Shown here one piece after another: positions 5,784-21,943 of a DNA stretch of 64,000 nucleotides (its first letter is position 1; every line of letters begins with the position of its first letter). Both the position numbers and the translations under genes were made by a program. Below the pieces are notes generated by a model that had not been told where the DNA came from, searched no databases, and saw only the letters and a list, made by a program, of their open reading frames with translations. The DNA lies in sequence record PP355768.1, one strand, 5' to 3'.

Positions 5784-5902
5784 TTTGCTTCCTCAGTTTG
5801 TCTTTGAATTAGTTAATGGTCAGCGACCAACTCACCACTTCGTTCATCGCGGGCACGACTCCGGATAGGAACAGGAAGGTGACTCCTATAACGGCCCTAC
5901 CG

Positions 5903-6975: not shown

Positions 6976-7402
6976 CTGAATTTTTCAATACTTTGGCTTC
7001 GGCACGCTTTCTTTTGTATTCGGCAGCTCCTTTTTCGAGTTCCGAATTAAGGTAGTCAACCATGGTATCCCACTTGCGATTTATCCAGTGACGAGTACCA
7101 TAATGCGAGAATACCTGTACGGTATAGTCTACCGGACTGGCGTCTTTGACGCTATACCAGGCCTCAGGACTAAACTGCTTGAGATCGTCCAGCTGCGGAG
7201 TTGGGATATCCAGAGCTTTTTGATGGTACAGTTTTGTCAGGTCAAATACTTTCTGCTGGTAACGTTCATGGTCACGATAGTAACCAGAGAGTCGCTCCAC
7301 TAGAGATTGGGCTGCTTCCAGATTACGAGAGGTTACAACGCAAATACGATCCGGCAACCCCTGCTCCATGAATTCATGTACTACACAATATCCGAGATCC
7401 AT
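6965..7402 (-). CDS. Hypothetical protein
   Basis: Start refined to MDLGY, abutting the upstream stop. Confidence 0.7.
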   Translation of the reverse strand: MDLGYCVVHEFMEQGLPDRICVVTSRNLEAAQSLVERLSGYYRDHERYQQKVFDLTKLYHQKALDIPTPQLDDLKQFSPEAWYSVKDASPVDYTVQVFSHYGTRHWINRKWDTMVDYLNSELEKGAAEYKRKRAEAKVLKNSVAL

Positions 7403-10168: not shown

Positions 10169-10549
10169 TTACTCTCCAAAAATAATTACAGGACACTGGT
10201 TTTCTCTGGCTATACGAACCACGTAAGCGTTTACGCCGTACTTAATAGCCAAGCTAGGCTCGTCAAACATAATGCAGCTGAATCGACGACCTATGCGGTA
10301 GGTTTCTAGCATGCTATACGTTGTAATTTTAACGTGAGGTTGAAGTTCATTATACTTCTTCTCTAGGCGTGCCATTTCACGGACACCGGATGCTACGTAT
10401 ACTGCTTGAATACCTTTAAATACTGCAAACTCATAGGCTGTATTAATAGCCTCGAACGTCTTGCCAGTAGCTCGTCCCGGATCGACTGATAGAGGCCAAC
10501 GAAGGTCAAGCTCTAGGAACCTGAATAGTTGGTTACGATCTATGTACAT
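10169..10549 (-). CDS. Small P-loop NTPase-like protein
   Basis: GRATGKT Walker A and CIMFDE Walker B. Confidence 0.65.
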   Translation of the reverse strand: MYIDRNQLFRFLELDLRWPLSVDPGRATGKTFEAINTAYEFAVFKGIQAVYVASGVREMARLEKKYNELQPHVKITTYSMLETYRIGRRFSCIMFDEPSLAIKYGVNAYVVRIARENQCPVIIFGE

Positions 10550-10896
10550 GCTGGCTCCTTAAACCAAACAATGCGAAAACCTGTCTCGTCCTCTAGAGCC
10601 TGCACAATTTGCTCTAACGTCAGAACCTTATCGGATGAGAATGTCCAAAGAAACTGTTGGAGTTCATTCCAAGACTCGGCCTCCATAATCGGAACACCGA
10701 TTTCCTGGCCGAAATAGTCATCAGTACCACGAACGTCAATGCGACCACCGGCATATCGTTTGGCAAATACTTTTCGAGTTAGTTGCCCGCCGTCTGCAAA
10801 ACGATTCGGCTCGGTTACTTCCGTATACGGAATACCCATACGAATGTACCAATTGTTGGAGACTGGCCCCATAAAATTGGTGCTATAAGTGATCAT
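10540..10896 (-). CDS. Hypothetical protein
   Basis: ATG with AGGAG SD. Confidence 0.75.
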   Translation of the reverse strand: MITYSTNFMGPVSNNWYIRMGIPYTEVTEPNRFADGGQLTRKVFAKRYAGGRIDVRGTDDYFGQEIGVPIMEAESWNELQQFLWTFSSDKVLTLEQIVQALEDETGFRIVWFKEPACT

Positions 10897-10912
10897 GATC
10901 ACTCCTTTAAAC

Positions 10913-10989
10913 TGGCAAACCCCAGGAGACTCGAACTCCTACTGCACGGTTTTGGAGACCGGCGTGCTGTCCAGTAACACTCGGGGAAT
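10913..10989 (-). tRNA. tRNA-Trp(CCA), atypical acceptor stem
   Basis: Cloverleaf, loop CT-CCA-AA, encoded CCA; U2:U71 and U3:U70 mismatches. Confidence 0.75.
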
Positions 10990-10993
10990 AGAA

Positions 10994-11185
10994 TTAGCTA
11001 CCGTGGTAGACAGATACTGTCTTACCATTCTGATTCATAACGTAAGCTACCTCATCTTCTTTTAGGAAGATATGCTGATCAAGGCCAGCAATAGAGATGC
11101 TCTTCTGCTTAGGGTTAAACCCAACGCTTGAACCATCGTGAATTTCTTCGCCACCGTTAGGTGACATTACCTTAACTGTTAACAT
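10994..11185 (-). CDS. Hypothetical protein
   Basis: 63 aa, AGGAG SD. Confidence 0.75.
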   Translation of the reverse strand: MLTVKVMSPNGGEEIHDGSSVGFNPKQKSISIAGLDQHIFLKEDEVAYVMNQNGKTVSVYHGS

Positions 11186-11202
11186 TTGCTTCTCCTATAG
11201 TT

Positions 11203-11378
11203 TGCCATCTCTGGCTGTTAAATGACGTCCTAACTATTATAGAGTCGAGCCCAGGCAGACGTCGGCACCCCGGACTACATAGGCTCTAGAACAGCAAATA
11301 ATTAGTATCGATAAAATGGCCTTACCGGCTCCCAGTTCCTTGTTTAATTCCCCGTAACGTCAGGGGACGGTCATTTTA
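11203..11378 (-). ncRNA. Candidate structured RNA
   Basis: No ORF; helices 11214-19/11290-95, 11224-29/11258-63, 11312-21/11369-78. Confidence 0.4.
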
Positions 11379-11385
11379 CCGAATT

Positions 11386-11461
11386 TGGAGCGACTAGGGG
11401 GAATCGAACCCCACTCAGTACCGCTTGGAAGGCGGACGCTGTAACCCGTACAGTTAGTCGC
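11386..11461 (-). tRNA. tRNA-Gly(TCC)
   Basis: Canonical cloverleaf, CCA end. Confidence 0.95.
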
Positions 11462-11599
11462 GGAATTATTTTATTACGCAAGTGCAGCCACCCGAGAATA
11501 TAGATCCGTAACACTTGTCGCACATAACGTCTTCTATTTTAAGAACTCTAAATTTCATAGGGGGTTATTACCTGTAGTAATATGCTTACCTTTTAGGGT

Positions 11600-11669
11600 T
11601 GCTGGCTTCCGGAATTGAACCGGAATTTAATGACAATGTAAACTTAATCACACTGTAACCATAACCAGC
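11600..11669 (-). pseudogene. Degenerate tRNA (intact acceptor and T arms; no CCA, no anticodon stem)
   Basis: GCTGGTT/AGCCAGC acceptor, TCCGG-TTCAATT-CCGGA T arm. Confidence 0.6.
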
Positions 11670-11674
11670 GAAAA

Positions 11675-11750
11675 TGGTGCCCCAAGTAGGAATCGAACCC
11701 ACGACCTACCGCTTACAAGGCGGTTGCTCTCCCGGCTGAGCTATTGAGGC
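11675..11750 (-). tRNA. tRNA-Thr(TGT)
   Basis: Canonical cloverleaf, CCA. Confidence 0.95.
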
Positions 11751-11755
11751 AAGAT

Positions 11756-11832
11756 TGGTCTCCCCTAAGTGATTTGAACACTTGACCTGACGCTCCCAAA
11801 GCGCCCGCTCTGCCAGACTGAGCTAAGGGGAA
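11756..11832 (-). tRNA. tRNA-Pro(TGG)
   Basis: Canonical cloverleaf, CCA. Confidence 0.95.
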
Positions 11833-11837
11833 ATATT

Positions 11838-11915
11838 TGGTACCCACTCCCGGACTCGAACCGGGAACCCTGAAGTCTTAAGCCTCATGCCTCTACCAGA
11901 TTGGACCAAGTGGGT
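11838..11915 (-). tRNA. tRNA-Leu(TAA), short variable loop
   Basis: Loop CT-TAA-GA, 5-nt variable loop, CCA. Confidence 0.85.
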
Positions 11916-11916
11916 G

Positions 11917-12066
11917 CTAATCGTTATCCAAGTAGGCTTCTATAGCCTCTAGGGCTTCCAGAGTAGAGATATTGAATCTCTCTTTAAGCACTACCACTAG
12001 AGTTTCCTGATTCCAGGAATCTACGGAATTAATGTAATTCTCGATGAAATTAGAGTAGCCGCCCAT
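11917..12066 (-). CDS. 49-aa hypothetical protein (not in ORF track)
   Basis: MGGYSNF...YLDND*; start overlaps the upstream stop (TAATG). Confidence 0.6.
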   Translation of the reverse strand: MGGYSNFIENYINSVDSWNQETLVVVLKERFNISTLEALEAIEAYLDND

Positions 12067-12404
12067 TATCGAATCTCCAGACCTTGGAAATACCGCGGGA
12101 ACGGAGAGCCCACTTCAAAGCTAATGCCCCAGTTGAGTTCCACCAGCTCTGACTTATCCAAAAGTAGATCATTGCCTTCAAAGATGTAGCCGTATACAGT
12201 TGGGAACATCGCTGCTAGATCTTCCATATTGGAGTAAGCATCATGCTCTTCACGGAATTGCTCAAACTCTTCAAAGAACTTCTCAAGGAAGAACTCCGGT
12301 ACAATGAACGTTACAACGTCAGTGCTATCATCAATACGATAGACCGTTGCCTGGAATAGGCCGACACCGACCAAGTTGATAGCAGGAGTAGTAAAGATAT
12401 CCAT
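12066..12404 (-). CDS. Acidic hypothetical protein
   Basis: 112-aa ORF. Confidence 0.75.
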   Translation of the reverse strand: MDIFTTPAINLVGVGLFQATVYRIDDSTDVVTFIVPEFFLEKFFEEFEQFREEHDAYSNMEDLAAMFPTVYGYIFEGNDLLLDKSELVELNWGISFEVGSPFPRYFQGLEIR

Positions 12405-12406
12405 TA

Positions 12407-12601
12407 TTAATATACCTTGATTAAAGTATTGTCGATGGTGTTCAGGAACTTAACTGCCGCATCTCTATTAGAGAATGTCTCCAGCACGATAATGTTGTTC
12501 TCAGGATCACCGTTACGCACTCGTATCTGGTACGATACAATCACTTCCCAGCGGAACCATAAAGCTCGTGGATTATATCGCATAAGAATTTTTTGATTCA
12601 T
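12407..12601 (-). CDS. Hypothetical protein
   Basis: 64-aa ORF behind a promoter. Confidence 0.7.
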   Translation of the reverse strand: MNQKILMRYNPRALWFRWEVIVSYQIRVRNGDPENNIIVLETFSNRDAAVKFLNTIDNTLIKVY

Positions 12602-12632
12602 TAGGTAAGCCCTCTCATTAATTTATATAAAT

Positions 12633-12661
12633 ATTATATTATAAATAAGAGCGTTTAGCAA
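12633..12661 (-). promoter_or_regulatory. Early promoter
   Basis: TTGCTA-17-TATAAT. Confidence 0.8.
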
Positions 12662-12692
12662 ATGAATTTTTCGAACTTTCGGGAAAATGCCA

Positions 12693-12904
12693 CCCTAAGT
12701 CAATGCCACTACTTGAGACGTTATAGGCAATCTATCTCAAGTTGTCTGCCCCATTGCTTTCAGTGATTTCTGCACGCAGAAATTCTTCTTGACTGGAGGA
12801 CTTTACCACGTCAAACGGCCGGAAATCAGTGGCTTATTTTATCCTGTCACCCATTACCTGCTTGTCTGAGTTTAATCAGAGAGCCTGTAACGGGCTACTT
12901 GGGA
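12693..12904 (-). ncRNA. Candidate ~210-nt multibranch RNA
   Basis: No ORF; closing helix plus several internal helices. Confidence 0.5.
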
Positions 12905-12906
12905 TT

Positions 12907-13015
12907 TGGAAGTATCAGTTGGATTCGAACCAACGCACCGGCTAACCTAGAGATCACCAGACGTTTCCAAGTCTGCTCACTAACGGCCAGCTGCTTTACC
13001 GTGAGCTTTAGGACT
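12907..13015 (-). ncRNA. tRNA-like RNA with helical extension replacing the anticodon loop, CCA end
   Basis: D arm GCT-CACGGTAA-AGC, T arm GTTGG-TTCGAAT-CCAAC, encoded CCA. Confidence 0.75.
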
Positions 13016-13048
13016 ATTCAGCTCCATAAGCTATTGATACTATTAATT

Positions 13049-13126
13049 TGGTGCAACCGGTTCGATTTGAACGAACGACCCCTGGACTTTCAAACCAGTG
13101 CTCTCACCTCGCTGAGCTACAGTTGC
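13049..13126 (-). tRNA. tRNA-Phe(GAA)
   Basis: Cloverleaf, U31:U39 mismatch, CCA. Confidence 0.9.
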
Positions 13127-13207
13127 GTAATTCGTGCCTGCTCCTTTGAATCAAGAAGTCCACCCCGGTCTTTGGGTCTTTGCAGTACATCACGCTGCTC
13201 TGATGTT

Positions 13208-13295
13208 TGGTGGAACTTGGGAGACTACGTGCTACTCCCCTCACAGACCGGGATTCCCCGCTATCTATGATGCTTAACCGATTAGCTGAAGTCCC
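13208..13295 (-). ncRNA. Anticodon-less tRNA mimic with alanine identity
   Basis: GGGACTT/AAGTTCC acceptor (G3:U70), A73, CCA, D arm, 11-nt T loop. Confidence 0.75.
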
Positions 13296-13301
13296 ATAAT
13301 G

Positions 13302-13377
13302 TGGTAGACCGCCCGGGACTCGAACCCGGAACCTATCGCTTAAAAGGCGAGTGCTCTAACCATTGAGCTAGCGATCT
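13302..13377 (-). tRNA. tRNA-Lys(TTT)
   Basis: Canonical cloverleaf, CCA. Confidence 0.95.
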
Positions 13378-13552
13378 ATGGATATGTTATTGTTACTTCC
13401 CATACATGAGCATAGCAGCTTTTCGATACTATATGGGTTTCCGCTTCTGTTAAAGCGGCTTCAAATGTATCATGTAACGTTGTACCTTCGAATTTAATAC
13501 TTGAATCTCCCGTTTGGGACTCTCTTGTTACAAACGCCTTATACTTAATCAT
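13376..13552 (-). CDS. 58-aa hypothetical protein
   Basis: Start refined to MIKYKAF (GAGG SD); the upstream part of the track ORF is tRNA-Cys. Confidence 0.7.
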   Translation of the reverse strand: MIKYKAFVTRESQTGDSSIKFEGTTLHDTFEAALTEAETHIVSKSCYAHVWEVTITYP

Positions 13553-13565
13553 AAGTACCTCGATT

Positions 13566-13639
13566 TGGAGCACCATCATGGATTTTAACCATGCTTCGAG
13601 GGTTTGCAAGCCTCTGCCTAGTCACTCGGCCAATGATGC
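13566..13639 (-). tRNA. tRNA-Cys(GCA)
   Basis: U73 discriminator, CCA; atypical T loop TTAAAAT; C31:C39 mismatch. Confidence 0.85.
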
Positions 13640-13646
13640 ATTGTTT

Positions 13647-13824
13647 AATTAGGGCGCACCGGAGTTCCACCGATTGCTAACGCTTCACTGCAACCTAAGT
13701 CGCTGTTCTTACCCTAATACTGTATTACTGACTAGGATTTTCACCTAGACGGAGTTAGCACCGTAGCGTGTAGCGGCATACCTCTCCAAACCGGGCCACA
13801 TCTTTCAATTTCGGTGGCAGTATT
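13647..13824 (-). ncRNA. Candidate two-domain RNA with T-loop-like hairpins
   Basis: AATACTG/CAGTATT and ATTAGGG/CCCTAAT closings; CTAGG-TGAAAAT-CCTAG. Confidence 0.5.
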
Positions 13825-13867
13825 CCTACGCGTGCCTGAGTTAATTAAATAACCCTTTCAGTAAAAT

Positions 13868-13945
13868 TGGCGGGAGAGGTGAGATTCGAACTCACTGTCA
13901 TTCGCTTAACAGGCGACCGCCTATACCACTTACTGCTTCTCTCCC
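13868..13945 (-). tRNA. tRNA-Asn(GTT)
   Basis: Cloverleaf, CCA. Confidence 0.95.
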
Positions 13946-13955
13946 AAATAGATTT

Positions 13956-14047
13956 AACAACCAAAGCGCTTTCGTCCATTTAAGCTACAAGGCCTTTATG
14001 CCGCCTGTTGCGTACGCGGGATTCGAACCCGGATCTCTTTGATTGTC
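13956..14047 (-). ncRNA. Circularly permuted tRNA-like RNA (YrlA-like topology)
   Basis: T arm precedes D arm; ends pair as an 11-bp stem in the anticodon-stem position. Confidence 0.75.
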
Positions 14048-14052
14048 AAAAT

Positions 14053-14140
14053 TGGTGGGGGAAGATGGAGTCGAACCACCCGAGCCGCAATGGCAACGAT
14101 TTTACAGACCGCTCTGCTACCACTTACAGAATATTCCCCC
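14053..14140 (-). tRNA. tRNA-Tyr(GTA)
   Basis: Long variable arm, CCA. Confidence 0.95.
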
Positions 14141-14178
14141 GTATTTGAAGAAGCTCTCGTGAGAACCTCTTCAAATAC
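14141..14178. repeat. 38-nt hairpin element, copy 1
   Basis: GTATTTGAAGA...CTCTCGTGAG...TCTTCAAATAC; second copy at 20116-20153. Confidence 0.7.
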
Positions 14179-14278
14179 CTCGTCGAAACGAGATATTTGC
14201 TAACTTATTGTGACTAGGGCTGACCCTTGTGTCTGAGGATACCTCTAGACGGTCATATCTCTTAGCCCAGAGAGAGTT

Positions 14279-14355
14279 TGGCGCGGCTAACGGGATTCGA
14301 ACCCGTGGCTCCGACGTGACAGGCCGGTATGTTGACCGCTGAACACCATAGCCGC
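14279..14355 (-). tRNA. tRNA-Asp(GTC)
   Basis: Canonical cloverleaf, CCA. Confidence 0.95.
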
Positions 14356-14363
14356 TTAATTTG

Positions 14364-14477
14364 TTATTCCGGTTCGTACTCCATCAGATCGTCTGACTCA
14401 CATGTCGGACACTCCCAATGGCATTCACTTAACTCACCGCAATCGGAACAAATGTATAACTTAACTTCATCTTCCAT
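14364..14477 (-). CDS. 37-aa zinc-ribbon mini-protein (not in ORF track)
   Basis: MEDEVKLYICSDCGELSECHWECPTCESDDLMEYEPE*; GAGGA SD; first gene after a promoter. Confidence 0.7.
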   Translation of the reverse strand: MEDEVKLYICSDCGELSECHWECPTCESDDLMEYEPE

Positions 14478-14507
14478 TTGCTTTTCCTCTTTCGTTTCAA
14501 TATAAAT

Positions 14508-14536
14508 ATTATACTAAATTTCAGGGTACTAGGCAA
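14508..14536 (-). promoter_or_regulatory. Early promoter
   Basis: TTGCCT-17-TATAAT. Confidence 0.75.
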
Positions 14537-14548
14537 ATGAATTTTTCA

Positions 14549-14764
14549 TTAATCGTCGTCTTCGTCCCATGAAAGGGAGTGCATGAAGATCGGTAGAACT
14601 GTAGGTTCTACGTCAAGCGACGGGTAGAAATAAGTTTTACCTTGAGACAGGTCAATGAATGTAGGAGTTCTACCCTCCTGCATGTGTTCATCAACCTTGT
14701 CTAGGGCGTCGTTTAACAGTTCGAAGCAGTCAGTATTCGCTCCGCAAACAACGATAAAATCCAT
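14549..14764 (-). CDS. Acidic hypothetical protein
   Basis: 71 aa, coupled to the upstream gene. Confidence 0.7.
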   Translation of the reverse strand: MDFIVVCGANTDCFELLNDALDKVDEHMQEGRTPTFIDLSQGKTYFYPSLDVEPTVLPIFMHSLSWDEDDD

Positions 14765-15141
14765 TAACGACCCCCGTTCGGGAAACCGGAGGCAAGCAGG
14801 AAGCGAACAACGTCTTCCAGCGACGGGCCTTCGCCATCTTCTTCTTCCAGATGGAAAGGCAGAATAGCGTACTGCATCTCAGCTGGCGCTACCGGGGTGA
14901 AGGTAGGCTCTGCGGGAGCTTCCGCCATGAACACTGCGGTTCCGTCAACCAGACGATCGATCGCTTCACAGACTTCTAGCTGTTCTTCGATCTTGGCCTC
15001 GCGTTCGCGCATCAGGGACAGCATCTCAGTGCGATACTCCTCAATACGACGGTCTAGAGACTCGATGTTGTTGGACAGGTTGTCCTGAACAATCATCAGG
15101 CGGACTACAGCAGAATTTCCATTAGTAGGACGTGTGTACAT
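14764..15141 (-). CDS. Coiled-coil hypothetical protein
   Basis: 125 aa, GAGGA SD. Confidence 0.75.
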   Translation of the reverse strand: MYTRPTNGNSAVVRLMIVQDNLSNNIESLDRRIEEYRTEMLSLMREREAKIEEQLEVCEAIDRLVDGTAVFMAEAPAEPTFTPVAPAEMQYAILPFHLEEEDGEGPSLEDVVRFLLASGFPNGGR

Positions 15142-15161
15142 AGTATTTCCTCAATTGATTA

Positions 15162-15434
15162 TTAGATAAAGTCGCCGGTAGAGACTACCAGTTTAATGCT
15201 TTTACGGAAGATTTCGTTCATACCGTCGTGAACCATTACTGTCCCGACCAGTTTTGGAAGGTAGACTTCCACATCAATATTACCGTATGGCATGGCGTGC
15301 TCGTCAGTAAGTTTAGTCCATAACTCCGGCTGAAGCTCGCAGTTATAGAACACCATCCATTCATGATCTCCGTCCCATCCGGCCCAATCAACCACCAGTG
15401 CAGATTCAATACCAGTTGCAGTAATCTTTTCCAT
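15162..15434 (-). CDS. Hypothetical protein
   Basis: 90 aa, GAGGAG SD. Confidence 0.75.
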   Translation of the reverse strand: MEKITATGIESALVVDWAGWDGDHEWMVFYNCELQPELWTKLTDEHAMPYGNIDVEVYLPKLVGTVMVHDGMNEIFRKSIKLVVSTGDFI

Positions 15435-15465
15435 TTGCTAACTCCTCTCATTAATTTATGTAACT

Positions 15466-15494
15466 ATTATACAGTAAATAAGAGCGTTTAGCAA
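15466..15494 (-). promoter_or_regulatory. Early promoter
   Basis: TTGCTA-17-TATAAT. Confidence 0.8.
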
Positions 15495-15511
15495 ATAAAT
15501 TTTTGAATTAT

Positions 15512-15915
15512 CCGCTCCGAAGAGCGGTAATCCAGGCTTGCAGCTGTTAATTGCACTTGGTTTGAAGTTGTCTAAGACATTAACTGAAGGTTGATAGCCT
15601 CCCCGTTTCTGCAATTAACAAATCCCAACTTGTTTTTAACGTGGATGCTTGGGTATTAAAGGAACCACTACGTTACACACTAGGGCCGATTGGCCGGAAC
15701 CTAGTCACTAACGCTAGGGCAATGACCGTCTAAGTCCCTAGATTCGCCATTTATACTCCTGGACGGCATGGAGTCGATTCCCTAGACTTTTACTCAGCAT
15801 TGCGCTAAAACCTGTAAAGGTAAGGATGGGGTATTCTTACGAATCTGGGATCATCCCCATCAGAAATTACAGCTTCTCGGACGTTTGACGGCCCTGACCG
15901 AAGTCTCACTGTAAA
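15512..15915 (-). ncRNA. Candidate ~400-nt structured RNA
   Basis: No credible ORF; 11-bp helix 15545-55/15610-20, several 6-7-bp helices, terminal C(UUCG)G hairpin. Confidence 0.55.
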
Positions 15916-15916
15916 T

Positions 15917-15992
15917 TGGTACTTGCTGCTGGTTTCGAACCAGCTACCCTCGCCGTGTAAAGACGATGCTCTCCCGATTGAGCTAAGCAAGT
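15917..15992 (-). tRNA. tRNA-Val(TAC)
   Basis: Canonical cloverleaf, CCA. Confidence 0.95.
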
Positions 15993-15995
15993 ATT

Positions 15996-16072
15996 TGGTG
16001 GTCAATAGTGGACTCGAACCACTGTAGTCTCACGTATGAAGCGAGTGCATAAACCATCTCTGCCAACTGACC
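15996..16072 (-). tRNA. tRNA with CAT anticodon (Met or Ile2)
   Basis: Loop TT-CAT-AC, G1:C72, CCA. Confidence 0.9.
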
Positions 16073-16079
16073 CAAAGAA

Positions 16080-16226
16080 TTTGCCTCAAGAATCTTACGC
16101 CACTATTCTTCTCCTACCTATACCTGATTTGCCCACAAAGTAAATTTGTCTAGGCTTAACAGGTAAGTACTATACTACGTACCATCGCTGGAGGATATTC
16201 CGATGAAATATCCTATAGGGGGCAAA
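16080..16226 (-). ncRNA. Candidate ~150-nt multibranch RNA
   Basis: Closing TTTGCC/GGCAAA; AGGATATT/AATATCCT and TACCTG/CAGGTA helices. Confidence 0.5.
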
Positions 16227-16229
16227 AAT

Positions 16230-16305
16230 TGGTACTCCGAACTGGACTCGAACCAGTGACCTAACGATTATCGGTCGTTTGCTCTACCAACTGAGCTATC
16301 GAAGC
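16230..16305 (-). tRNA. tRNA-Ile(GAT)
   Basis: Canonical cloverleaf, CCA. Confidence 0.95.
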
Positions 16306-16306
16306 A

Positions 16307-16465
16307 TTATTGTTCCTGCTGGCGGACGCAGATTTCCTCGTCCGGGTGTATTTTAGCGATCCTAGCGTCTTCCTCGGCTTCATTGTAGGTGTCGTGAAAA
16401 GCCGGTGCCAAGAATACAATCTCTTTTGTGTGGGTATTAATTAGCATACCTTGATAGCGAGTCAT
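16307..16465 (-). CDS. 52-aa hypothetical protein (not in ORF track)
   Basis: MTRYQGML...RQQEQ*; GAGGT SD. Confidence 0.65.
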   Translation of the reverse strand: MTRYQGMLINTHTKEIVFLAPAFHDTYNEAEEDARIAKIHPDEEICVRQQEQ

Positions 16466-16472
16466 AGTTACC

Positions 16473-16667
16473 TCAACGTTTACCATTACGAGGTGCTCCG
16501 GGACGTTTAGCAGCTTCTGCCATTCGTTTCTTGATTTTAGCGATATTCTCTGGTGTTTGTTCTGACTTGCGTAAGCCTGTCACGTTACACCAGCTATCAC
16601 CTTCCCAAGAAGTGATTAGCATTACTCCAGTACCTAGTACTCGTTCTGTGAAAGAGATTTTCATCAT
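16473..16667 (-). CDS. Hypothetical protein
   Basis: 64 aa, AGGAG SD. Confidence 0.7.
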   Translation of the reverse strand: MMKISFTERVLGTGVMLITSWEGDSWCNVTGLRKSEQTPENIAKIKKRMAEAAKRPGAPRNGKR

Positions 16668-16680
16668 CTTCTCCTAGAAT

Positions 16681-16757
16681 TGGATGCTCCGGCAAGATTC
16701 GAACTTGCGATCTCCAGCTTATGAGACTGGCGAGGACGGCCTCTCCTCTACGGTGCA
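16681..16757 (-). tRNA. tRNA with CAT anticodon (Met-type)
   Basis: Loop CT-CAT-AA, U1:A72, A4:A69 mismatch, CCA. Confidence 0.9.
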
Positions 16758-16759
16758 AT

Positions 16760-16835
16760 TGGCAGGGGCAACAAGAATCGAACTTGTGACCTAAGGCTTC
16801 AGAGACCTCCGCTCTACCTACTGAGCTATACCCCA
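16760..16835 (-). tRNA. tRNA-Gln(CTG)
   Basis: Cloverleaf, G73, CCA. Confidence 0.95.
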
Positions 16836-16845
16836 ATTATGCGCA

Positions 16846-16958
16846 CTCTGCTGAGTACAACGTTGTGTCTAGGGCCAGAACATAAATGCTTGCATTTATG
16901 GGAAGCGGCTAGAAGAGGGATGTGACCCGGAGGGCTAACCTCGTCACTCTCAGCAGAG
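16846..16958 (-). ncRNA. Candidate three-way-junction RNA
   Basis: Perfect 10-bp closing stem CTCTGCTGAG/CTCAGCAGAG and two internal arms. Confidence 0.55.
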
Positions 16959-16964
16959 ATTTTA

Positions 16965-17039
16965 TGGTACACCATCGAGGAATCGAACCTCAACCATAGA
17001 GTTCGTAGCTCTATATTCTATCCATTAAACTAATGGTGC
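16965..17039 (-). tRNA. tRNA-Arg(ACG)
   Basis: Canonical cloverleaf, CCA. Confidence 0.95.
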
Positions 17040-17046
17040 AGTAATC

Positions 17047-17123
17047 TGGAGGGATATCTTGGATTCGAACCAAGATAGACTCGATCCACAATCGAGGTCA
17101 TTATCCAGTTATGATAATATCCC
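17047..17123 (-). tRNA. tRNA-His(GTG) lacking G-1:C73
   Basis: Loop TT-GTG-GA; U73; T at position -1. Confidence 0.85.
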
Positions 17124-17276
17124 AAATTTGAGTACCATCGAGGGCTGATCAGACCTCCACAAATAAAATGCACATCGCACACCGTATTTGGTTAGACCGC
17201 GTACTGGGTATAGGACACTCAGTGTACTACGTAGTCCCAGCGTACGACTCCTATAATATCAATGATACTCAAATTT
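17124..17276 (-). ncRNA. Candidate ~150-nt structured RNA
   Basis: 11-bp closing stem AAATTTGAGTA/TACTCAAATTT with nested arms. Confidence 0.5.
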
Positions 17277-17376
17277 GGTGGCCCTAAGAAACTCTTCCCA
17301 CTCACAACTAGTTGATTACTTCTGGATTTTCGCCCAGAAAATTCTCTAGAAAGGGGCAACCGTTACTCGTCGGGCC
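17276..17376 (-). ncRNA. CCA-ended 101-nt RNA with an acceptor-like stem
   Basis: GGCCC(GA)/(TA)GGGCC-A-CCA; TTCTGG-GCGAAAAT-CCAGAA hairpin. Confidence 0.6.
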
Positions 17377-17382
17377 ATTGTT

Positions 17383-17468
17383 TGGCGGAAAGCGAAGGAC
17401 TTGAACCTTCATGCCCTTGCGGACTCATCATTAGCAGTGATGCGTGGCTACCGTTTCACCAGCTTTCC
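17383..17468 (-). tRNA. tRNA-Ser(GCT)
   Basis: Long variable arm, G73, CCA. Confidence 0.95.
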
Positions 17469-17475
17469 AGTTGTT

Positions 17476-17560
17476 TGGCGGAGAATAAAGGAATCGAACC
17501 CTCACCGTTTCCGATGGCGACTGATTTCAAGTCAGCTTGCTCCCATGAGCACTACTCTCC
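17476..17560 (-). tRNA. tRNA-Ser(TGA)
   Basis: Long variable arm, G73, CCA. Confidence 0.95.
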
Positions 17561-17573
17561 AGTTAATATAAGA

Positions 17574-17667
17574 TGATGCCTCGACTACACCGGGCTGTTT
17601 AAGCCCCGCCAGGATTCGAACCTGTTAAAACAGTGTTTCCACCAGCCGTAGGTTTCACTGAACATCA
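17574..17667 (-). ncRNA. T-arm-containing RNA with paired ends
   Basis: TGATGTT/GGCATCA closing stem; GAAA hairpin; CAGG-TTCGAAT-CCTG; GC hairpin. Confidence 0.6.
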
Positions 17668-17671
17668 AATT

Positions 17672-17758
17672 TGGTAGGGATGGAGGGGGTCGAACCCACA
17701 CGGATATTTCACCACTAGAACCTAAATCTAGCGCGGCTGCCAATTTCGCCACATCCCC
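17672..17758 (-). tRNA. tRNA-Leu(TAG)
   Basis: Long variable arm, CCA. Confidence 0.95.
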
Positions 17759-17765
17759 ATTTGTT

Positions 17766-17844
17766 TGGTGGAGGATAACGGATTTGAACCGTTCTGATTC
17801 CCGCATTGCAAGTGCGGTGTCCACTCCCAGCAGACCCATCCCCC
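17766..17844 (-). tRNA. tRNA-Ala(TGC)
   Basis: G3:U70, A73, CCA. Confidence 0.95.
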
Positions 17845-17849
17845 AATAA

Positions 17850-18059
17850 TTTGTTAAGGCAATTAATCCGGTGCGCGTAATACCCTGAGCAATTAGCCAT
17901 GCAAGGATACCCGCTCTTCACAAATACGATACACTCTACGCTTACCAGGCGTTTCGGAGAGCCACTCCGCTATTCTTGCAAACCCTCAGTTCAATTACCG
18001 AGCAAGCTGCAAGCGTGTTTTTTGGTTCCGGCTCTGTATCAGATTAATTCCTTAACAAA
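17850..18059 (-). ncRNA. Candidate ~210-nt rod-like RNA starting at a promoter
   Basis: ~17-bp closing helix 17851-68/18042-58 with further nested helices. Confidence 0.55.
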
Positions 18060-18069
18060 CTATATAAAT

Positions 18070-18098
18070 ATTATATCAATTTGTTAAGCATTTAGCAA
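18070..18098 (-). promoter_or_regulatory. Early promoter
   Basis: TTGCTA-17-TATAAT. Confidence 0.8.
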
Positions 18099-18117
18099 CT
18101 GAATTTTTCAGTAAATT

Positions 18118-18194
18118 TGGTACTCCCGACGGGGTTCGAACCCGTGTTCCCACTGTGAAAGAGTGGTGTCCTAACCAGCTTAGACGACAGGAGC
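18118..18194 (-). tRNA. tRNA-Glu(TTC)
   Basis: Canonical cloverleaf, CCA. Confidence 0.95.
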
Positions 18195-18204
18195 ATTTTA
18201 AATT

Positions 18205-18280
18205 TGGCAAGGGAAGGAGGAGTTGAACCTACCGATCTCGGAGTCAAAGGCCGATGCCGTAACCACTTGGCTATTCCCTT
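18205..18280 (-). tRNA. tRNA-Gln(TTG)
   Basis: Cloverleaf, C31:U39 mismatch, CCA. Confidence 0.95.
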
Positions 18281-18291
18281 TCAATATAAAT

Positions 18292-18320
18292 ATTATCTCA
18301 AATTCTAAAGCATTTAGCAA
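18292..18320 (-). promoter_or_regulatory. Early promoter
   Basis: TTGCTA-17-GATAAT. Confidence 0.7.
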
Positions 18321-18339
18321 TTGAATTTTTCAAGTATTT

Positions 18340-18367
18340 TGGTAGTGACCCGGCAACGCAGGTCACT
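18340..18367 (-). ncRNA. CCA-ended acceptor microhelix
   Basis: AGTGACC-loop-GGTCACT-A-CCA. Confidence 0.4.
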
Positions 18368-18374
18368 ATGCAAA

Positions 18375-18869
18375 CTACTCGCCGTGGTCTACACGAATGA
18401 GCGGACAAAGTTTGTCCTTCTTGTAGATTCGCATCTTTTGGTAGATGTTACCGAAGCGAAGCTCTTCATCGCGAGCATTATACTCTTTCTGTGCTCTTTC
18501 AAAGGATTTACTAGCGTTCCATTCCTGGATCCGATCCCCTATCTTAGCGCAGGCCCAGCCGATCCCAGCTATCGCCAGCAGAATCGCTACTATCGTAGAT
18601 AGTCCTGCTAGACTTAACCCTACAAGCATGTACCAGGGAGTAATTCCCAGCTCAAAGGTGAGGCCCAAGAACGTAGATAAGATACTTCCCATCCCCAAGG
18701 AGAAGAGTACAGCAATAGCAGTTACGCCAATCTGTAGCAGGAAATACCACACTGAGTGCCAAAATAGGCTACACAAGGTGACTCTGTTGTCGTTCAGCCG
18801 ATAGGTGAAAGACGCGGAAGAGAAATTAAGCCACTTGTAGAAAAAACCTTTACGTTTAATATTCAGCAT
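18375..18869 (-). CDS. Membrane protein
   Basis: Two or three TM segments, 164 aa. Confidence 0.8.
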   Translation of the reverse strand: MLNIKRKGFFYKWLNFSSASFTYRLNDNRVTLCSLFWHSVWYFLLQIGVTAIAVLFSLGMGSILSTFLGLTFELGITPWYMLVGLSLAGLSTIVAILLAIAGIGWACAKIGDRIQEWNASKSFERAQKEYNARDEELRFGNIYQKMRIYKKDKLCPLIRVDHGE

Positions 18870-18879
18870 ATTTAGCCTA

Positions 18880-19089
18880 TTACTTGAGTTGATTGATTAG
18901 GAAAACTTGTAGCGCGATAATGAATGCGGCATAGGAGTCAGAGCCTTTACCACCTTCGTTCTCATTAACTTCTTTTAGTAGGGCTTCAAAAGCTGCTTTG
19001 TGACGCTCATAGTGCCCTCTGACTGTCGGGCCAGCATCCTCTAACATGCCTAAAAGCATATAGTACTGGGTTTGTAATTGGGCGTCCAT
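18880..19089 (-). CDS. Hypothetical protein
   Basis: TAATG coupling, GGAGG SD. Confidence 0.75.
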   Translation of the reverse strand: MDAQLQTQYYMLLGMLEDAGPTVRGHYERHKAAFEALLKEVNENEGGKGSDSYAAFIIALQVFLINQLK

Positions 19090-19286
19090 TAGTCCTCCCA
19101 CACGATTTTAATCGAGAGAAGACGATTTACAGGAATGACCAGCATAGTCTCAGACCGTTTATTAAGAATTTCCAGGATATCCCCATCACGATGGAGCAGA
19201 CGTTTAGGACTGATATCTGTTACTGTGGACTCTAGGACGATACCACTGTCATCCACGAAGGATACGATTGCGTTTTTAGTAGACAT
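19089..19286 (-). CDS. Hypothetical protein
   Basis: 65 aa, AGGAG SD. Confidence 0.75.
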   Translation of the reverse strand: MSTKNAIVSFVDDSGIVLESTVTDISPKRLLHRDGDILEILNKRSETMLVIPVNRLLSIKIVWED

Positions 19287-19307
19287 TTTAGTCTCCTGTT
19301 ATGAAAT

Positions 19308-19385
19308 TGGTGGCTCCCGGAGGATTCGAACCTGCCTACCTTCCGCTTATGAGGCGGGTGCTCATACCCAATGAGCTTGAGAACC
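19308..19385 (-). tRNA. tRNA with CAT anticodon (Ile2 or Met)
   Basis: Loop CT-CAT-AA, G1:C72, A73, CCA. Confidence 0.9.
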
Positions 19386-19415
19386 TGAGAAGGGCTATTT
19401 CTAGCCCTTAGTTAT

Positions 19416-19709
19416 TTATACTGCTGCTTCATCTTCCGGGGTGCCTTCCACCGGAGGTTCTTCAGTAGGGGTATCCCCTACCGGAGTGTCTTCAGTTGGA
19501 GCATCTTCAACCGGCTCAGGATCTTTCACGAAGCCTGCTTCTTCATCGGAGATCACATACAGATCCTGAATATCCTCTGTATTGATCATACGAGCTACGC
19601 TACCATCTTTATAGAAGACGGATTTAGTGCCCTCGTTGCGAGCCATGTTCGCATCGATAATCAGCTCAGTGAGAACCCCTTTCTTTAAATATTCAATTTT
19701 GTAAGCCAT
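19416..19709 (-). CDS. Hypothetical protein with acidic Pro/Thr-rich repeat tail
   Basis: EDAPTEDTPVGDTPTEEPP tail; GAGGA SD. Confidence 0.8.
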   Translation of the reverse strand: MAYKIEYLKKGVLTELIIDANMARNEGTKSVFYKDGSVARMINTEDIQDLYVISDEEAGFVKDPEPVEDAPTEDTPVGDTPTEEPPVEGTPEDEAAV

Positions 19710-19743
19710 TTTATCCTCTACTTTCTCTTTGATTTAAAGAACT

Positions 19744-19772
19744 ATTATACAAAATTTCTGACAAAATTGCAA
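19744..19772 (-). promoter_or_regulatory. Early promoter
   Basis: TTGCAA-17-TATAAT. Confidence 0.8.
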
Positions 19773-19860
19773 GAAAAATTTTGTAGAATCAATCTCAGTC
19801 TGCGCCCTGCGGGCTTTTTACCGCTGCCCACTGAATATTACGTGTGGGCAGCGATTAAAG

Positions 19861-19936
19861 TGGTACTCCCTACAGGATTCGAACCTGTGACCCACGGTTT
19901 AGAAGACCGTTGCTCTATCCTCTGAGCTAAGGAAGC
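19861..19936 (-). tRNA. tRNA-Arg(TCT)
   Basis: Canonical cloverleaf, CCA. Confidence 0.95.
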
Positions 19937-19937
19937 A

Positions 19938-20102
19938 TTAATAAAGTTTAAGTGTTTTGACAACCAGATCATGAACCTGTTCAGAATACCGGCCAACGCT
20001 CTTATGCAGCGACTCCTTAAATTCTAGAGTACGTCTAGCGATTAGCTGCTTCTGTTCAGGTGTCAGATTCGGTGGTGGACGTTCATAAGGTGGTGTACGC
20101 AT
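19938..20102 (-). CDS. 54-aa hypothetical protein (not in ORF track)
   Basis: MRTPPYERPPP...TLKLY*; AGGAG SD. Confidence 0.65.
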   Translation of the reverse strand: MRTPPYERPPPNLTPEQKQLIARRTLEFKESLHKSVGRYSEQVHDLVVKTLKLY

Positions 20103-20115
20103 GTTAGTCTCCTAA

Positions 20116-20153
20116 GTATCTTTAAGAACTCTCGTGAAAGCTCTTAAAGATAC
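20116..20153. repeat. 38-nt hairpin element, copy 2
   Basis: GTATCTTTAAGA...CTCTCGTGAA...TCTTAAAGATAC. Confidence 0.7.
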
Positions 20154-21397
20154 CGCCAGTAGGTAGGGGCCTTCCCCTGTTTAAGCTATGCGGCCCTTCT
20201 GTCAGACGTATCTTCCAGTTATAGTCAAGGTGACTAATATACCTTGCCAGATCCCGGCCAACGGATATCCGTCGGCTAATGCGGTCTAGGCGAGGGCACA
20301 CTCCAAACAGGGGCACTTCTAGCCTGTGTAAGGGTGCTATAAATAGTGGTTATGCTTTCGCTCGGGGTGACTCCGGTCATGACTCCATTGTCACATGCTT
20401 ACACAGGGTATACGAGCTTCCGCGGAGCTGTATACTCAACCGTGTCCCACTTAGGTCTCGGAGCCACCGTTTGTACGAACGGCTATCCGAATACTCTTTC
20501 CCACTTAGAATCAGGCGAGATCCCACCTCGCCAAAGTTCATACGATCATCATGCCGTATTTAAGGACTAGCTTTGGCACTTCTGGAGAGCCATCCTCCAC
20601 GCGGTCTGTTAAAATCACACCTCCGAATTTTCGATGTGAAGTTTGGCTATCTCTAGCCTTCCAGCGTATGGTCGCTTCGCACCTGCCACTCTTACGTTCA
20701 AATCGGTTTAGGTGGTGGCAACCCTCCGAAGTTCCGAGTTTGGTTGAGGCCGTCAGGTTTCCTCGTGGTTTAGCTGTTTCGTTCCCGCGAGTCTCCCAAG
20801 TCTTTCCCTGGGAGGGGAGGAGGTACTCCAGCAGCGAGTGGTTCGCCAATAGAACCATCAGTTATCTAGCTCTTTCCGACCGCAGGATTCGAACCTGCAC
20901 TTTCCGCATCTGGGGATAGCTCCCCGCGTGCAGAAGTCTACCAATTAACTTAGGACGGCAGTGTTGCTACATAAGTGATTTCGACACCCCACTATGGTGG
21001 CAATAACCAGCACCAGACGCTATACACATGTCTCCAATTTGCAGCCTAGGCAGGTCAGTGTGGGAGCTATACGAGTTTCTCAGGCTCAGTTCCCCACCTC
21101 TCCGGCAGGCCACGCACCATGCTTCATTCTGGTCGAACAAGTTAAAGTGAGATTCCACCATTTTCTATAAATCAGGAGAAGAGTTTACGAGACTCCGGGA
21201 CAGCTCCCGAGTTTTACAAGAGATCTCTAACCTACGCCCGTCCAATACGCTCCCTGGCCGGTATCCGGACTGGATGCACGAACTTTGTCAGGTGATCACT
21301 CTTAACTCACCGATTCTATTCAACGAATCTTAATGCTCGACGAGTCTTACATTAAAACAAGTTCAGCGTAATCGGCCCGCTGTTCTCTCTAATTTAT
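20154..21397 (-). ncRNA. Candidate giant structured RNA (~1.2-1.3 kb, possibly more than one RNA)
   Basis: No SD-led ORF; over 20 hand-found helices; embedded tRNA-like domain; dedicated promoter. Confidence 0.65.
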
Positions 21398-21403
21398 GAA
21401 ACT

Positions 21404-21432
21404 ATTATATCAGCTTTTTAAGCATTAGGCAA
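21404..21432 (-). promoter_or_regulatory. Promoter driving the giant non-coding region
   Basis: TTGCCT-17-TATAAT, overlapping the hydrolase stop. Confidence 0.8.
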
Positions 21433-21879
21433 CTGAGATTTTAATTTATAGAACACATGGTTGCCAATTTTACTTGTTCTTTTGAAGTCCTTGTCTTTTG
21501 TCCAGTAAGGTTTAGTATCTTTACTGTGAAAGTACAAAGCTCCCTTCGTCGGATCTACTGGAAGATCCATATAGTAAACTAGTCTAGCTATCTCTTTAGC
21601 TTGTTTCCACTCTTCGTCTTTACGATCGAGTTTATGTTTCTTTTTACCAACCCAGCTGAACTGCCCTGGTTGATAGACTACTTTACAATATGTGGACGGG
21701 AATTTTCCATAGTTAACACGATTTTTCGTTACTTGTGCAACTGCGGTCATTCCTTTAACTCCTTCCCCTCTAGCTTCAAAGTACACATTTTTAGCTATGC
21801 ACTCTATCTCATGCGCATCAATCTTTGCCTGCGCATGGAAGCTAGTGAGGATGGAGATCATTAGAATGGCTGCTTTCAT
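21418..21879 (-). CDS. Cell-wall hydrolase, SleB/Hydrolase_2 family
   Basis: CIAKNVYFEARGE, VVYQPGQFSW and IGNHVFY motifs. Confidence 0.9.
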   Translation of the reverse strand: MKAAILMISILTSFHAQAKIDAHEIECIAKNVYFEARGEGVKGMTAVAQVTKNRVNYGKFPSTYCKVVYQPGQFSWVGKKKHKLDRKDEEWKQAKEIARLVYYMDLPVDPTKGALYFHSKDTKPYWTKDKDFKRTSKIGNHVFYKLKSQLPNA

Positions 21880-21943
21880 TATTTCTCCTTTACTCTTTGA
21901 TTCAAGAATAATAGTATATCAAGAAATCAGCCATTTAGTCAAA

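Follow-up and report, generated by a model that had tools for sequence, protein, structure and literature searches.

The RNA species I and II of phage T4 accumulate stably and are matured by tRNA-processing enzymes, and no function is known to have been assigned to them. In phage T5, the reference genome (NC_005859) lists eight misc_RNA features in the tRNA region. RNAI, RNAIII, RNA2H, RNAIV and RNAX are labeled there as ‘stable RNA with unknown functions’, RNA1 and RNA2 as ‘tRNA-like stable RNA’, and RNA3 as ‘putative tRNA-like RNA’. The stable RNAs of both tRNA clusters have been without an assigned function for decades. Here we analyze a stretch of 64,000 nucleotides from sequence record PP355768.1 (referred to as the window), in which 26 tRNA genes and the gaps between them occupy positions 10913–21432. 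The region represents the early tRNA operons of a T5-like phage (Sugarlandvirus, Demerecviridae). No fewer than twelve structured non-coding RNAs, belonging to approximately ten unrelated families, are encoded in its gaps. A first-pass annotation of the sequence had stated that T5 was reported to make non-tRNA stable RNAs from this region. The statement was correct, and three of the eight T5 RNAs have homologs in the window.

Viable T5 mutants with deletions of 3–8 kb in the tRNA region are known, and these deletions have been described as non-essential (PMC11464382). These deletions remove either RNAI, RNAIII and RNA1, or RNA2H, RNAIV, RNA2 and RNA3 (PMC11464382). The tRNAs of such operons can neutralize tRNA-cleaving defenses, as T5 tRNA-Lys does against PARIS and tRNA-Tyr against retron Eco7 (PMC11464382; PMC10644984). 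GOLLD and ROOL are large, heavily structured RNAs of phages and prophages; they are found beside tRNA islands, in some cases with tRNAs inside them, and no function is known for them (10.1101/2024.12.08.627333).

The window has 100% identity to Klebsiella phage vB_Kpn_AM_K6 (PP355768.1), and it is collinear with the 109–123 kb genomes of the Sugarlandviruses KpGranit, Sugarland and IME260 at approximately 96% identity. ARAGORN finds 25 tRNA genes, every one on the minus strand, which span 10913–19936 and are confirmed by Rfam. A further gene, tRNA-Gly(UCC) at 11390–11461 (Rfam 29 bits; 85% identity to T5 tRNA-Gly), was overlooked by both ARAGORN and the GenBank annotation, and brings the number to the 26 counted in the first pass. 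We notice that the first anticodon-stem pair of this tRNA-Gly is mismatched. All elements of the window for which coordinates are given below lie on the same minus strand.

The minus strand of the gaps was folded and compared with dinucleotide shuffles, and nine neighboring coding sequences served as comparison. Fourteen of the 15 gaps fold better than their shuffles, with z-scores that are typically −2 to −3.3 and reach −6.4 at 14140–14278. The average of the nine coding sequences is approximately −0.7. The earlier claim that almost every gap without an open reading frame led by a Shine-Dalgarno sequence folds into long, end-closed helices is confirmed, with the qualification that two gaps hold small open reading frames and two hold only a hairpin and a promoter. 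Helices that join both ends of an element were found in the homologs of T5 RNAI and RNA2H, in an RNA that leads tRNA-His, and in the elements referred to as G10, G12, G6, G5a, G3a, G2a, G1a and G9.

Since thermodynamics by itself is weak evidence, we compared the elements across relatives. The comparison set comprised the tRNA regions of 13 relatives, namely T5, HildyBeyeler, Salmonella 1-19, STP-SP9, Ob_P, KKP_3711, Eos, Erwinia KEY, Pectobacterium DU_PP_V and four Sugarlandviruses, and homologs were taken from GenBank phage records. Covariation was measured as the number of pairs changed on both sides, and this number was set against column shuffles and against alignments in which the 3′ partner had been slid. 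Compensatory pair changes support the RNAI, RNA2H and RNAX homologs, the tRNA-His-leader RNA, G10, G5a, G2b, G7 and G3a. Covariation across homologous spacers, whose absence had been named in the first pass as part of what would refute the candidate system, is clear in at least nine families and partial in G12. Because the helices are maintained by compensatory changes, selection acts on the RNAs themselves.

To judge from the sequences, the array consists of relatives of already known T5 stable RNAs, three of them by homology. The RNAI homolog (17276–17376) has an acceptor-like closing stem and an encoded CCA. In alignment A1, which contains 12 sequences including T5 RNAI, every member starts with GGCYC and ends with GRGCC-N-CCA. 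The 24 predicted pairs are 95.8% paired, and nine of them are changed on both sides, compared with 4.2 in column shuffles (reached by 1 of 500) and 1–5 in slid alignments. The RNA2H homolog (17845–18062) begins right after the promoter at 18098 and ends at tRNA-Ala, which it abuts; T5 RNA2H likewise follows promoter P13b. A long closing helix joins its two ends, and 21 of 51 pairs are changed on both sides in alignment A3 (10 sequences including T5 RNA2H).

A 146-nucleotide RNA lies directly 5′ of tRNA-His (17127–17272), where T5 encodes RNAIII. The two RNAs have similar closing stems, whereas the interior of the RNA in the window is different and longer. Alignment A2 (nine sequences) contains 49 pairs, which are 94.8% paired, and 19 of them are changed on both sides, in contrast to 9.7 in shuffles (0 of 500 reached the observed number) and 1–5 when slid. 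Two loops of this RNA, CGCGGUCUAAC and GGAGGUCUGAUCAGCCCUC, are nearly invariant. For T5 RNAIII, RNA1, RNA2, RNAIV and RNA3, blastn gave no match in the window beyond T-arm words, and their counterparts here are positional or architectural.

The RNAX-like RNA is a large non-coding RNA of approximately 1.3 kb (20103–21403), recognized by synteny with T5 RNAX and by blastn. The order is as in T5, with a P16-17-like promoter followed by the RNA and by tRNA-Arg(UCU). The blastn matches to T5 RNAX have E-values of 7e-18, at a tRNA-like module, and 3e-10, and the interior is largely different. The tRNA-like module (20868–20965) consists of an acceptor-like stem, a D-like arm and the T-arm GCAGGTTCGAATCCTGC, and it lacks an anticodon loop and CCA. 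At the 3′ end, the hairpin AAGAGCTTTCACGAGAGTTCTT (20113–20153) shares 90% identity with the corresponding end of T5 RNAX. Substitutions are spread evenly over codon positions, insertions and deletions do not come in threes, and in sub-segments of the RNA 30 of 113, 12 of 25, 18 of 115 and 9 of 61 pairs are changed on both sides, against 0–9 when slid. These non-coding signals and the covarying pairs together indicate a large structured non-coding RNA. A protein-coding role of the region was considered and rejected: sense and antisense open reading frames are broken in relatives and have no PHROG family. The Rfam models of GOLLD and ROOL gave no match in 10500–22000, even at E ≤ 10.

We also notice a hairpin with the core AAGAG-N-UU-NN-ACGAGAG-N-UCUU, by which the RNAX-like RNA (20124–20145) and T5 RNAX (16851–16891) are both closed at the 3′ end. 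A longer relative stands directly 5′ of tRNA-Tyr (14141–14177). The hairpin may be a processing site or a protein-binding site.

Further families occupy other gaps. G10 (16836–16964), an end-closed RNA of four helices between tRNA-Arg(ACG) and tRNA-Gln(CUG), has 13 of 36 pairs changed on both sides (alignment A4, five sequences). G5a (13711–13867) is an end-closed RNA that occurs in 277 phage records; its closing helix and a second helix covary, and 80 nucleotides of it are invariant across genera. G7 (14140–14278) is a structured RNA with a terminal 17-bp hairpin abutting tRNA-Tyr, z-scores of −6.4 and −4.7, and five pairs changed on both sides. G2b (12690–12914), located between G2a and the promoter at 12661–12633, has six such pairs against 0–2 when slid. 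G8 (15500–15916), a structured RNA of approximately 415 nucleotides after tRNA-Val (z = −2.2), terminates with a UUCG hairpin immediately ahead of the promoter at 15494–15466. Compared with phage Eos, the 3′ two-thirds of G8 show three and six pairs changed on both sides, against 0–1 when slid.

G12 (17561–17671), downstream of tRNA-Leu(UAG), is an end-closed RNA with the internal orphan T-arm CAGGTTCGAATCCTG. Across eight sequences, its T-arm helix and a second hairpin covary; a further covarying long-range helix was seen by eye alone, and the MAFFT alignment is too poor to count it. G5b (13640–13717) is a separate hairpin module of 78 nucleotides, found without G5a in some relatives, and G3b (13127–13214) is a small structured module with 95% identity in Enterobacter phage KKP_3711. 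For G5b and the 5′ third of G8, the homologs vary too little for a covariation test. G1b (11200–11389) is a structured spacer before the coding sequence at 11185–10994, with the weak evidence of one pair changed on both sides. A 76% match to G5a was also observed in the 142-kb Klebsiella myophage VIK251.

Parts of tRNAs recur within these elements. The T-loop motif GGTTCRAWTCC is present in 14 copies, compared with 0.08 expected, all on the minus strand within the region. Five T-arms stand outside tRNAs, at 11611, 12921, 14019, 17612 and 20885, and they are carried by G1a, G2a, G6, G12 and the RNAX-like RNA. G2a (12915–13041) is a tRNA-like RNA of 126 nucleotides with an acceptor stem, a D arm, the T arm GTTGGTTCGAATCCAAC, U73 and CCA. 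Approximately 70 nucleotides replace its anticodon arm, and the layout is that of T5 RNA2 and RNA1. G1a (11597–11672; z = −5.9) combines an acceptor stem, one long hairpin and the T-arm CCGGTTCAATTCCGG, and lacks the D arm and CCA. In G6 (13944–14052), which is closed by a 14-bp helix, the T-arm precedes a D-arm-like segment, so that the tRNA modules are permuted.

An acceptor-like stem followed by NCCA forms the 3′ end of G2a, G3a and the RNAI homolog. No usable anticodon loop was found in the gap elements. Hairpins of the anticodon type (5-bp stem, 7-nucleotide loop with U33 and R37) are not enriched: six were counted, of which two are T-arms, where approximately two would be expected. The mimicry concerns the acceptor and T-arm half of tRNA, not the anticodon, which agrees with the previous remark that several elements keep tRNA modules and have lost or rearranged the anticodon.

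No Rfam family matches the gap RNAs. Searches at the gathering threshold and at E ≤ 10 returned tRNAs and chance matches only, with no GOLLD, ROOL, YrlA or transfer-messenger RNA (tmRNA) in the window. The YrlA model (bacterial Y RNA) reached 26.7 bits, of 69 needed, in a match over tRNA-Pro and tRNA-Leu. RF00005 stayed below threshold for G2a (21.2 versus 29 bits), and the other gap elements had no match to it, except for the tRNA-Gly at 11461–11390.

G3a (13208–13296), five nucleotides after tRNA-Lys, is a cloverleaf-like RNA. It has a 7-bp acceptor stem (G1:C72, G2:C71, G3:U70), A73 and CCA. The D-like arm AGCUAAUCGGUUAAGC is followed by a long central hairpin without an anticodon loop. A 5-bp T-like stem with the 11-nucleotide loop UARCACGUAGU is stacked straight on the acceptor stem. 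G3a thereby carries the bacterial alanine identity set, which consists of A73, G2-C71, G3.U70 and G4-C69 (PMC9976931). Among the 26 tRNAs of the window, only tRNA-Ala has both G3:U70 and A73; an apparent G3:U70 in tRNA-Tyr is an artefact of register. Francklyn and Schimmel reportedly found in 1989 that alanine can be attached to RNA minihelices bearing these marks.

Diverged copies of G3a are present in two additional T5-like lineages (those of the Kpn24-P3 and STP-SP9 types), in the Tequintaviruses NBSal003 and OSYSP, in two metagenome contigs, and in Kaypoctavirus, a genus of N4-like Klebsiella phages. A motif scan of metagenomes returned chance matches for the most part, together with two genuine diverged homologs and one copy from a Sugarlandvirus; protein and motif scans of IMG/VR returned only IME260 and Sugarland themselves. 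One of the metagenome contigs comes from an N4-like phage, with genes for virion RNA polymerase, primase, Sak4 and SSB. This locus has no tRNA within its 5.7 kb, and G3a is therefore more than a tRNA spacer.

The diverged copies were aligned by a covariance model, which scores nine copies at 54–116 bits; the next best matches are ordinary tRNAs, at 25 bits or less. In the alignment of nine sequences, which was thus fitted to the model and covers few lineages, 28 pairs are 96.4% paired, and 14 pairs are changed on both sides, compared with 9.2 in shuffles (0 of 500) and 1–3 when slid. Acceptor pairs 1–3 are G:C, G:C and G:U in all nine sequences, and A73 and CCA are invariant. Pairs 4–7 have all changed on both sides, and G4-C69 is found in six of the nine. 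The identity set is maintained in at least six lineages and two phage families. We found no report of this alanine identity in the literature searched.

The Kaypoctavirus copy of G3a gives a weak match to the Rfam tmRNA model that spans both model ends (13.7 bits, E = 0.02) and lies far below threshold. In the window, neither ARAGORN nor Rfam reports a tmRNA, and there is no tag-like frame. As a separate observation, a tag-like frame, ANDDVVLMAA-stop, is conserved in two N4-like Klebsiella phages (576–608 and 884–916), 0.6–0.9 kb upstream of their G3a copy. It coincides with a weak match to the Rfam ‘permuted tmRNA’ model (32 bits versus a threshold of 47). ARAGORN calls no tmRNA in this stretch, and nothing is annotated there in the one record checked. 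In an unrelated 139-kb phage contig of IMG/VR (approximately 2800–2850), the D-like motif of G3a, AGCTAATCGGTTAAGC, makes up the loop of a perfectly paired hairpin that directly precedes a tRNA-like sequence.

The promoters of the region are of one form. TTGC-N19-TATAAT is present in 19 copies in the window against 0.13 expected, whereas a generic sigma-70 scan found 18 sites against 17.6 expected, so that only the specific form is enriched. Six copies lie in the tRNA region, at 21432, 19772, 18098, 15494, 14536 and 12661, all on the tRNA strand, and the claim that the gap RNAs stand on this strand behind TTGCNN-17-TATAAT promoters holds. Together with an upstream A-rich block, these promoters align at 77–89% to annotated T5 promoters (among them P11, P13b, P15b/c and P16-17). 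The early promoter TTGCCT-17-TATAAT (21404–21432) is the counterpart of T5 P16-17, and TTGCTA-17-TATAAT (18070–18098) is that of P13b. Two others follow G8 (15466–15494) and G2b (12633–12661). Because the single terminator-like match on the tRNA strand sits within tRNA-His (17096–17080), there is no terminator between the genes. We infer that the T5-type sigma-70 early promoters drive the gap RNAs and the tRNAs as common transcripts.

Among the Sugarlandviruses, which are approximately 96% identical, the elements are distributed as a mosaic. G5a is absent from IME260 and Kpn24-P3, and G2a from Kpn24-P3. G6 is found only in IME260 and Kpn_3, at approximately 100% identity. G9, an end-closed RNA between tRNA-Met and tRNA-Ile (16073–16229), is shared only with phage Sugarland. 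The block of RNAI and the tRNA-His-leader RNA is only 86% identical among these phages, and the RNAX-like RNA of Kpn24-P3 has only 75–78% identity. Across genera, the G5a copies of Yersinia phage phiR2-01 and Enterobacter phage KKP_3711 have 98% and 96% identity, respectively.

The matches of G5a suggest that modules of the tRNA region are exchanged between phage families. Genes for homing (HNH) endonucleases are present in the same region of relatives, and T4 SegB recognizes the T-loop motif of tRNA genes (PMC2330249). Cassette-like exchange fits accessory functions in the interaction with the host, and it accounts for the origin of rearranged tRNA pieces. The first-pass annotation had described one single ‘system’. 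What we see instead is a mosaic of approximately ten unrelated RNA families that varies between close relatives.

On the basis of these findings, we propose that the structured non-coding RNAs in T5-type tRNA operons are dispensable accessory RNAs, whose targets in trans are tRNA-handling proteins of the host. We give this reading a probability of roughly 0.55. The RNAs would be transcribed with the tRNAs from the early promoters and then excised by the tRNA-maturation machinery. RNase P would cleave where the following tRNA or tRNA-like stem begins, and the 3′ side would be trimmed back as far as the closing helix or CCA. The closing helix locks both ends of an element, and this is the proposed cause of the persistence of the gap RNAs. 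For T5, the annotation of NC_005859 describes the RNAs as stable, and those of the window may likewise accumulate as discrete RNAs in infected cells.

As a tentative extension, for which the odds are clearly lower, the tRNA-like elements might, in trans, present host tRNA-handling proteins with a copy of the acceptor half of tRNA, with G3a as a predicted substrate of AlaRS that resembles the tRNA-like domain of tmRNA. RNase P would be expected to cleave G3a and the host AlaRS to charge it, which would yield a non-decoding molecule resembling Ala-tRNA. Candidate targets are AlaRS, EF-Tu, SmpB, or a toxin directed at the acceptor end. Somewhat more doubtful still is the idea that the G3a family is a stand-alone, non-decoding and alanine-accepting mimic, a free tmRNA-like acceptor domain common to T5-like and N4-like enterobacterial phages and acting in trans. 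In its charged form, G3a would, for example, compete for SmpB, EF-Tu or AlaRS, or absorb toxins that attack aminoacylated or CCA ends.

Several points weigh against the accessory reading. No paper in the literature searched assigns a function to the T5 stable RNAs, even after decades; papers on DRT4 and Schlafen have no bearing on them, and stability is known for the T5 homologs alone, through database annotation. The alanylation of G3a is predicted from identity rules, and its T-like loop of 11 nucleotides is not a canonical T-loop. G6, G9 and G1a are without comparative support, with too little variation among their homologs. The covariation as a whole comes from few independent lineages, with 5–12 sequences per alignment, and one alignment, A11, had been fitted to the model. 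In addition, some RNAs are tightly linked to one tRNA, which is equally compatible with a role in cis.

Such a role in cis is the alternative that survives best, although we regard it as rather unlikely for the array. The RNAs would then be processing spacers that insulate the tRNAs, guide RNase P or RNase E, or protect the transcript, and the stable fragments would be by-products without function. The constant contact of the 146-nucleotide RNA with tRNA-His, the position of the RNA2H homolog next to tRNA-Ala both here and in T5, and the G7 hairpin beside tRNA-Tyr are all in line with spacers, as is the isolation of each domain by an end-closing helix. However, many neighboring tRNAs of these operons are separated by no more than 2–10 nucleotides and manage without a structured spacer, and close relatives with the same tRNAs lack some elements. 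Loops and long single strands are invariant across genera, including the 80 nucleotides of G5a and the loops of the tRNA-His-leader RNA. The G3a family, moreover, persists at an N4-like locus with no tRNA in 5.7 kb, and it keeps a G:U wobble and A73-CCA that an insulator does not need.

The elements could also be decaying tRNA pseudogenes or scars of recombination, whose pieces are shuffled by homing endonucleases and T-arm recombination and remain as neutral leftovers. The five orphan T-arms, the permuted order of T-arm and D-arm in G6 and the mosaic presence and absence are what such debris would look like, and the HNH endonuclease genes in relatives and the T-loop target of T4 SegB (PMC2330249) offer a means of producing it. 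G6, G9 and G1a, which lack covariation support, add to this. Against it stand at least nine families with compensatory changes and conservation across genera, as well as the full identity set of G3a in at least six lineages and two phage families. We therefore consider this origin improbable for the array, and plausible only for a subset made up of G6, G1a and perhaps G9.

The first-pass annotation had proposed a decoy or sponge arsenal that would act on anticodon nucleases, synthetases or tRNA-sensing immunity. Least probable is the main part of this proposal, that the RNAs are decoys which soak up PrrC, RloC, PARIS, PtuAB or similar anticodon nucleases: it accords with their place in the same operons as T5-type tRNAs that counter PARIS and retron Eco7 (PMC11464382; PMC10644984), with the position of several beside tRNA-Lys, Tyr, Asn, Asp and His, and with accessory mosaic behavior typical of counter-defense loci, but the elements have no usable anticodon loop, none has a canonical stem and U33/R37 loop that copies a target anticodon, and the PARIS sensitivity of a T5 deletion mutant is partly rescued by a four-tRNA fragment that includes tRNA-Lys (PMC11464382).

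The remaining gaps differ from the RNA array. A 58-residue open reading frame (13376–13552), unannotated and preceded by a Shine-Dalgarno sequence (GAGG, 7 nucleotides upstream), occupies the gap 13378–13565; it is probably coding and lies outside the RNA array. The gap 11186–11674 contains, besides tRNA-Gly, an unannotated 30-residue open reading frame (11466–11558) with a CxxC...CxC pattern. Neither frame has a PHROG match. The gaps 18281–18374 and 19710–19860 consist of hairpin and promoter and nothing more. In the latter, two hairpins after tRNA-Arg are followed by the promoter TTGCAA-17-TATAAT (19744–19860), and there is no separate RNA family.

We also notice some irregularities of annotation. 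In many GenBank records, a ‘hypothetical protein’ is annotated over the RNAI homolog, the RNAX-like RNA and others, for example at 7222–7383, 10869–11195 and 5578–5904 in the sequences of three relatives. In T5-like genomes, annotated ‘tRNA-Asn’ genes of 83–86 nucleotides run a few nucleotides into the G5a homolog, whereas a normal tRNA-Asn has 76. The record PP355768.1 itself is 261 kb long and labeled Straboviridae, although its window part is collinear with Sugarlandvirus (Demerecviridae); it is probably two phage genomes joined.

What appears to be new is the definition of families backed by covariation, their lack of Rfam coverage, their spread across phage families, and the alanine identity of G3a. 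The families of stable RNAs are conserved, covary and extend over hundreds of T5-like genomes, as exchangeable accessory cassettes. The sets of homologs number 277 records for G5a, 208 for the pair of RNAI homolog and tRNA-His-leader RNA, and approximately 100 for G3a. Of the T5-like BASEL phages, TrudiGerster has G3a and RNAI, and HildyBeyeler has G5a and G12. Covariance models of them would correct phage annotation. The alanine set of G3a and its occurrence in N4-like phages make the old question of what these RNAs do directly testable, and the answer is relevant to phage tRNAs and tRNA-targeting immunity. If G3a is indeed a stand-alone, alanine-accepting mimic, the stable RNAs of T5 and T4 type would be a toolbox of acceptor-half mimics of tRNA, and the RNAX-like RNA would be a third kind of large tRNA-island RNA beside GOLLD and ROOL.

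Compared with GOLLD and ROOL, the RNAX-like RNA is alike in context only: at 0.7–1.3 kb it adjoins tRNA-Arg and embeds a tRNA-like module, but its interior is far more variable between relatives. The phage tRNAs that act in counter-defense share the operons of the gap RNAs, and they share the logic of an RNA that meets host proteins directed at tRNA. Those tRNAs, however, decode and replace cleaved host tRNAs, whereas the gap RNAs, without anticodon loops, cannot decode.

G3a resembles the tRNA-like domain of tmRNA and the alanine minihelices in having G1:C72, G2:C71, G3:U70, A73 and CCA in nine of nine copies. As in the tRNA-like domain of tmRNA, its acceptor stem is stacked on a 5-bp stem and there is no anticodon. 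It differs from tmRNA in its length of only 80–88 nucleotides, in having neither tag frame nor pseudoknots, and in the 11-nucleotide loop that takes the place of the T-loop.

The RNA species I and II of T4 are likewise non-tRNA small RNA genes within a phage tRNA cluster (PMC2330249), although T4 belongs to an unrelated phage family. The closest counterparts are the stable RNAs of T5. For G3a, G5a, G10, G12, G7 and others, no counterpart could be detected in T5, and the RNAX-like RNA measures 1.3 kb here, in contrast to 0.72 kb for T5 RNAX. In both phages, however, the RNAs are interspersed among the early tRNA genes, share their strand and stand behind T5-type early promoters. End-closed and tRNA-like architectures are common to both, and the RNAI, RNA2H and RNAX homologs of the window share covarying structure with the RNAs of T5.

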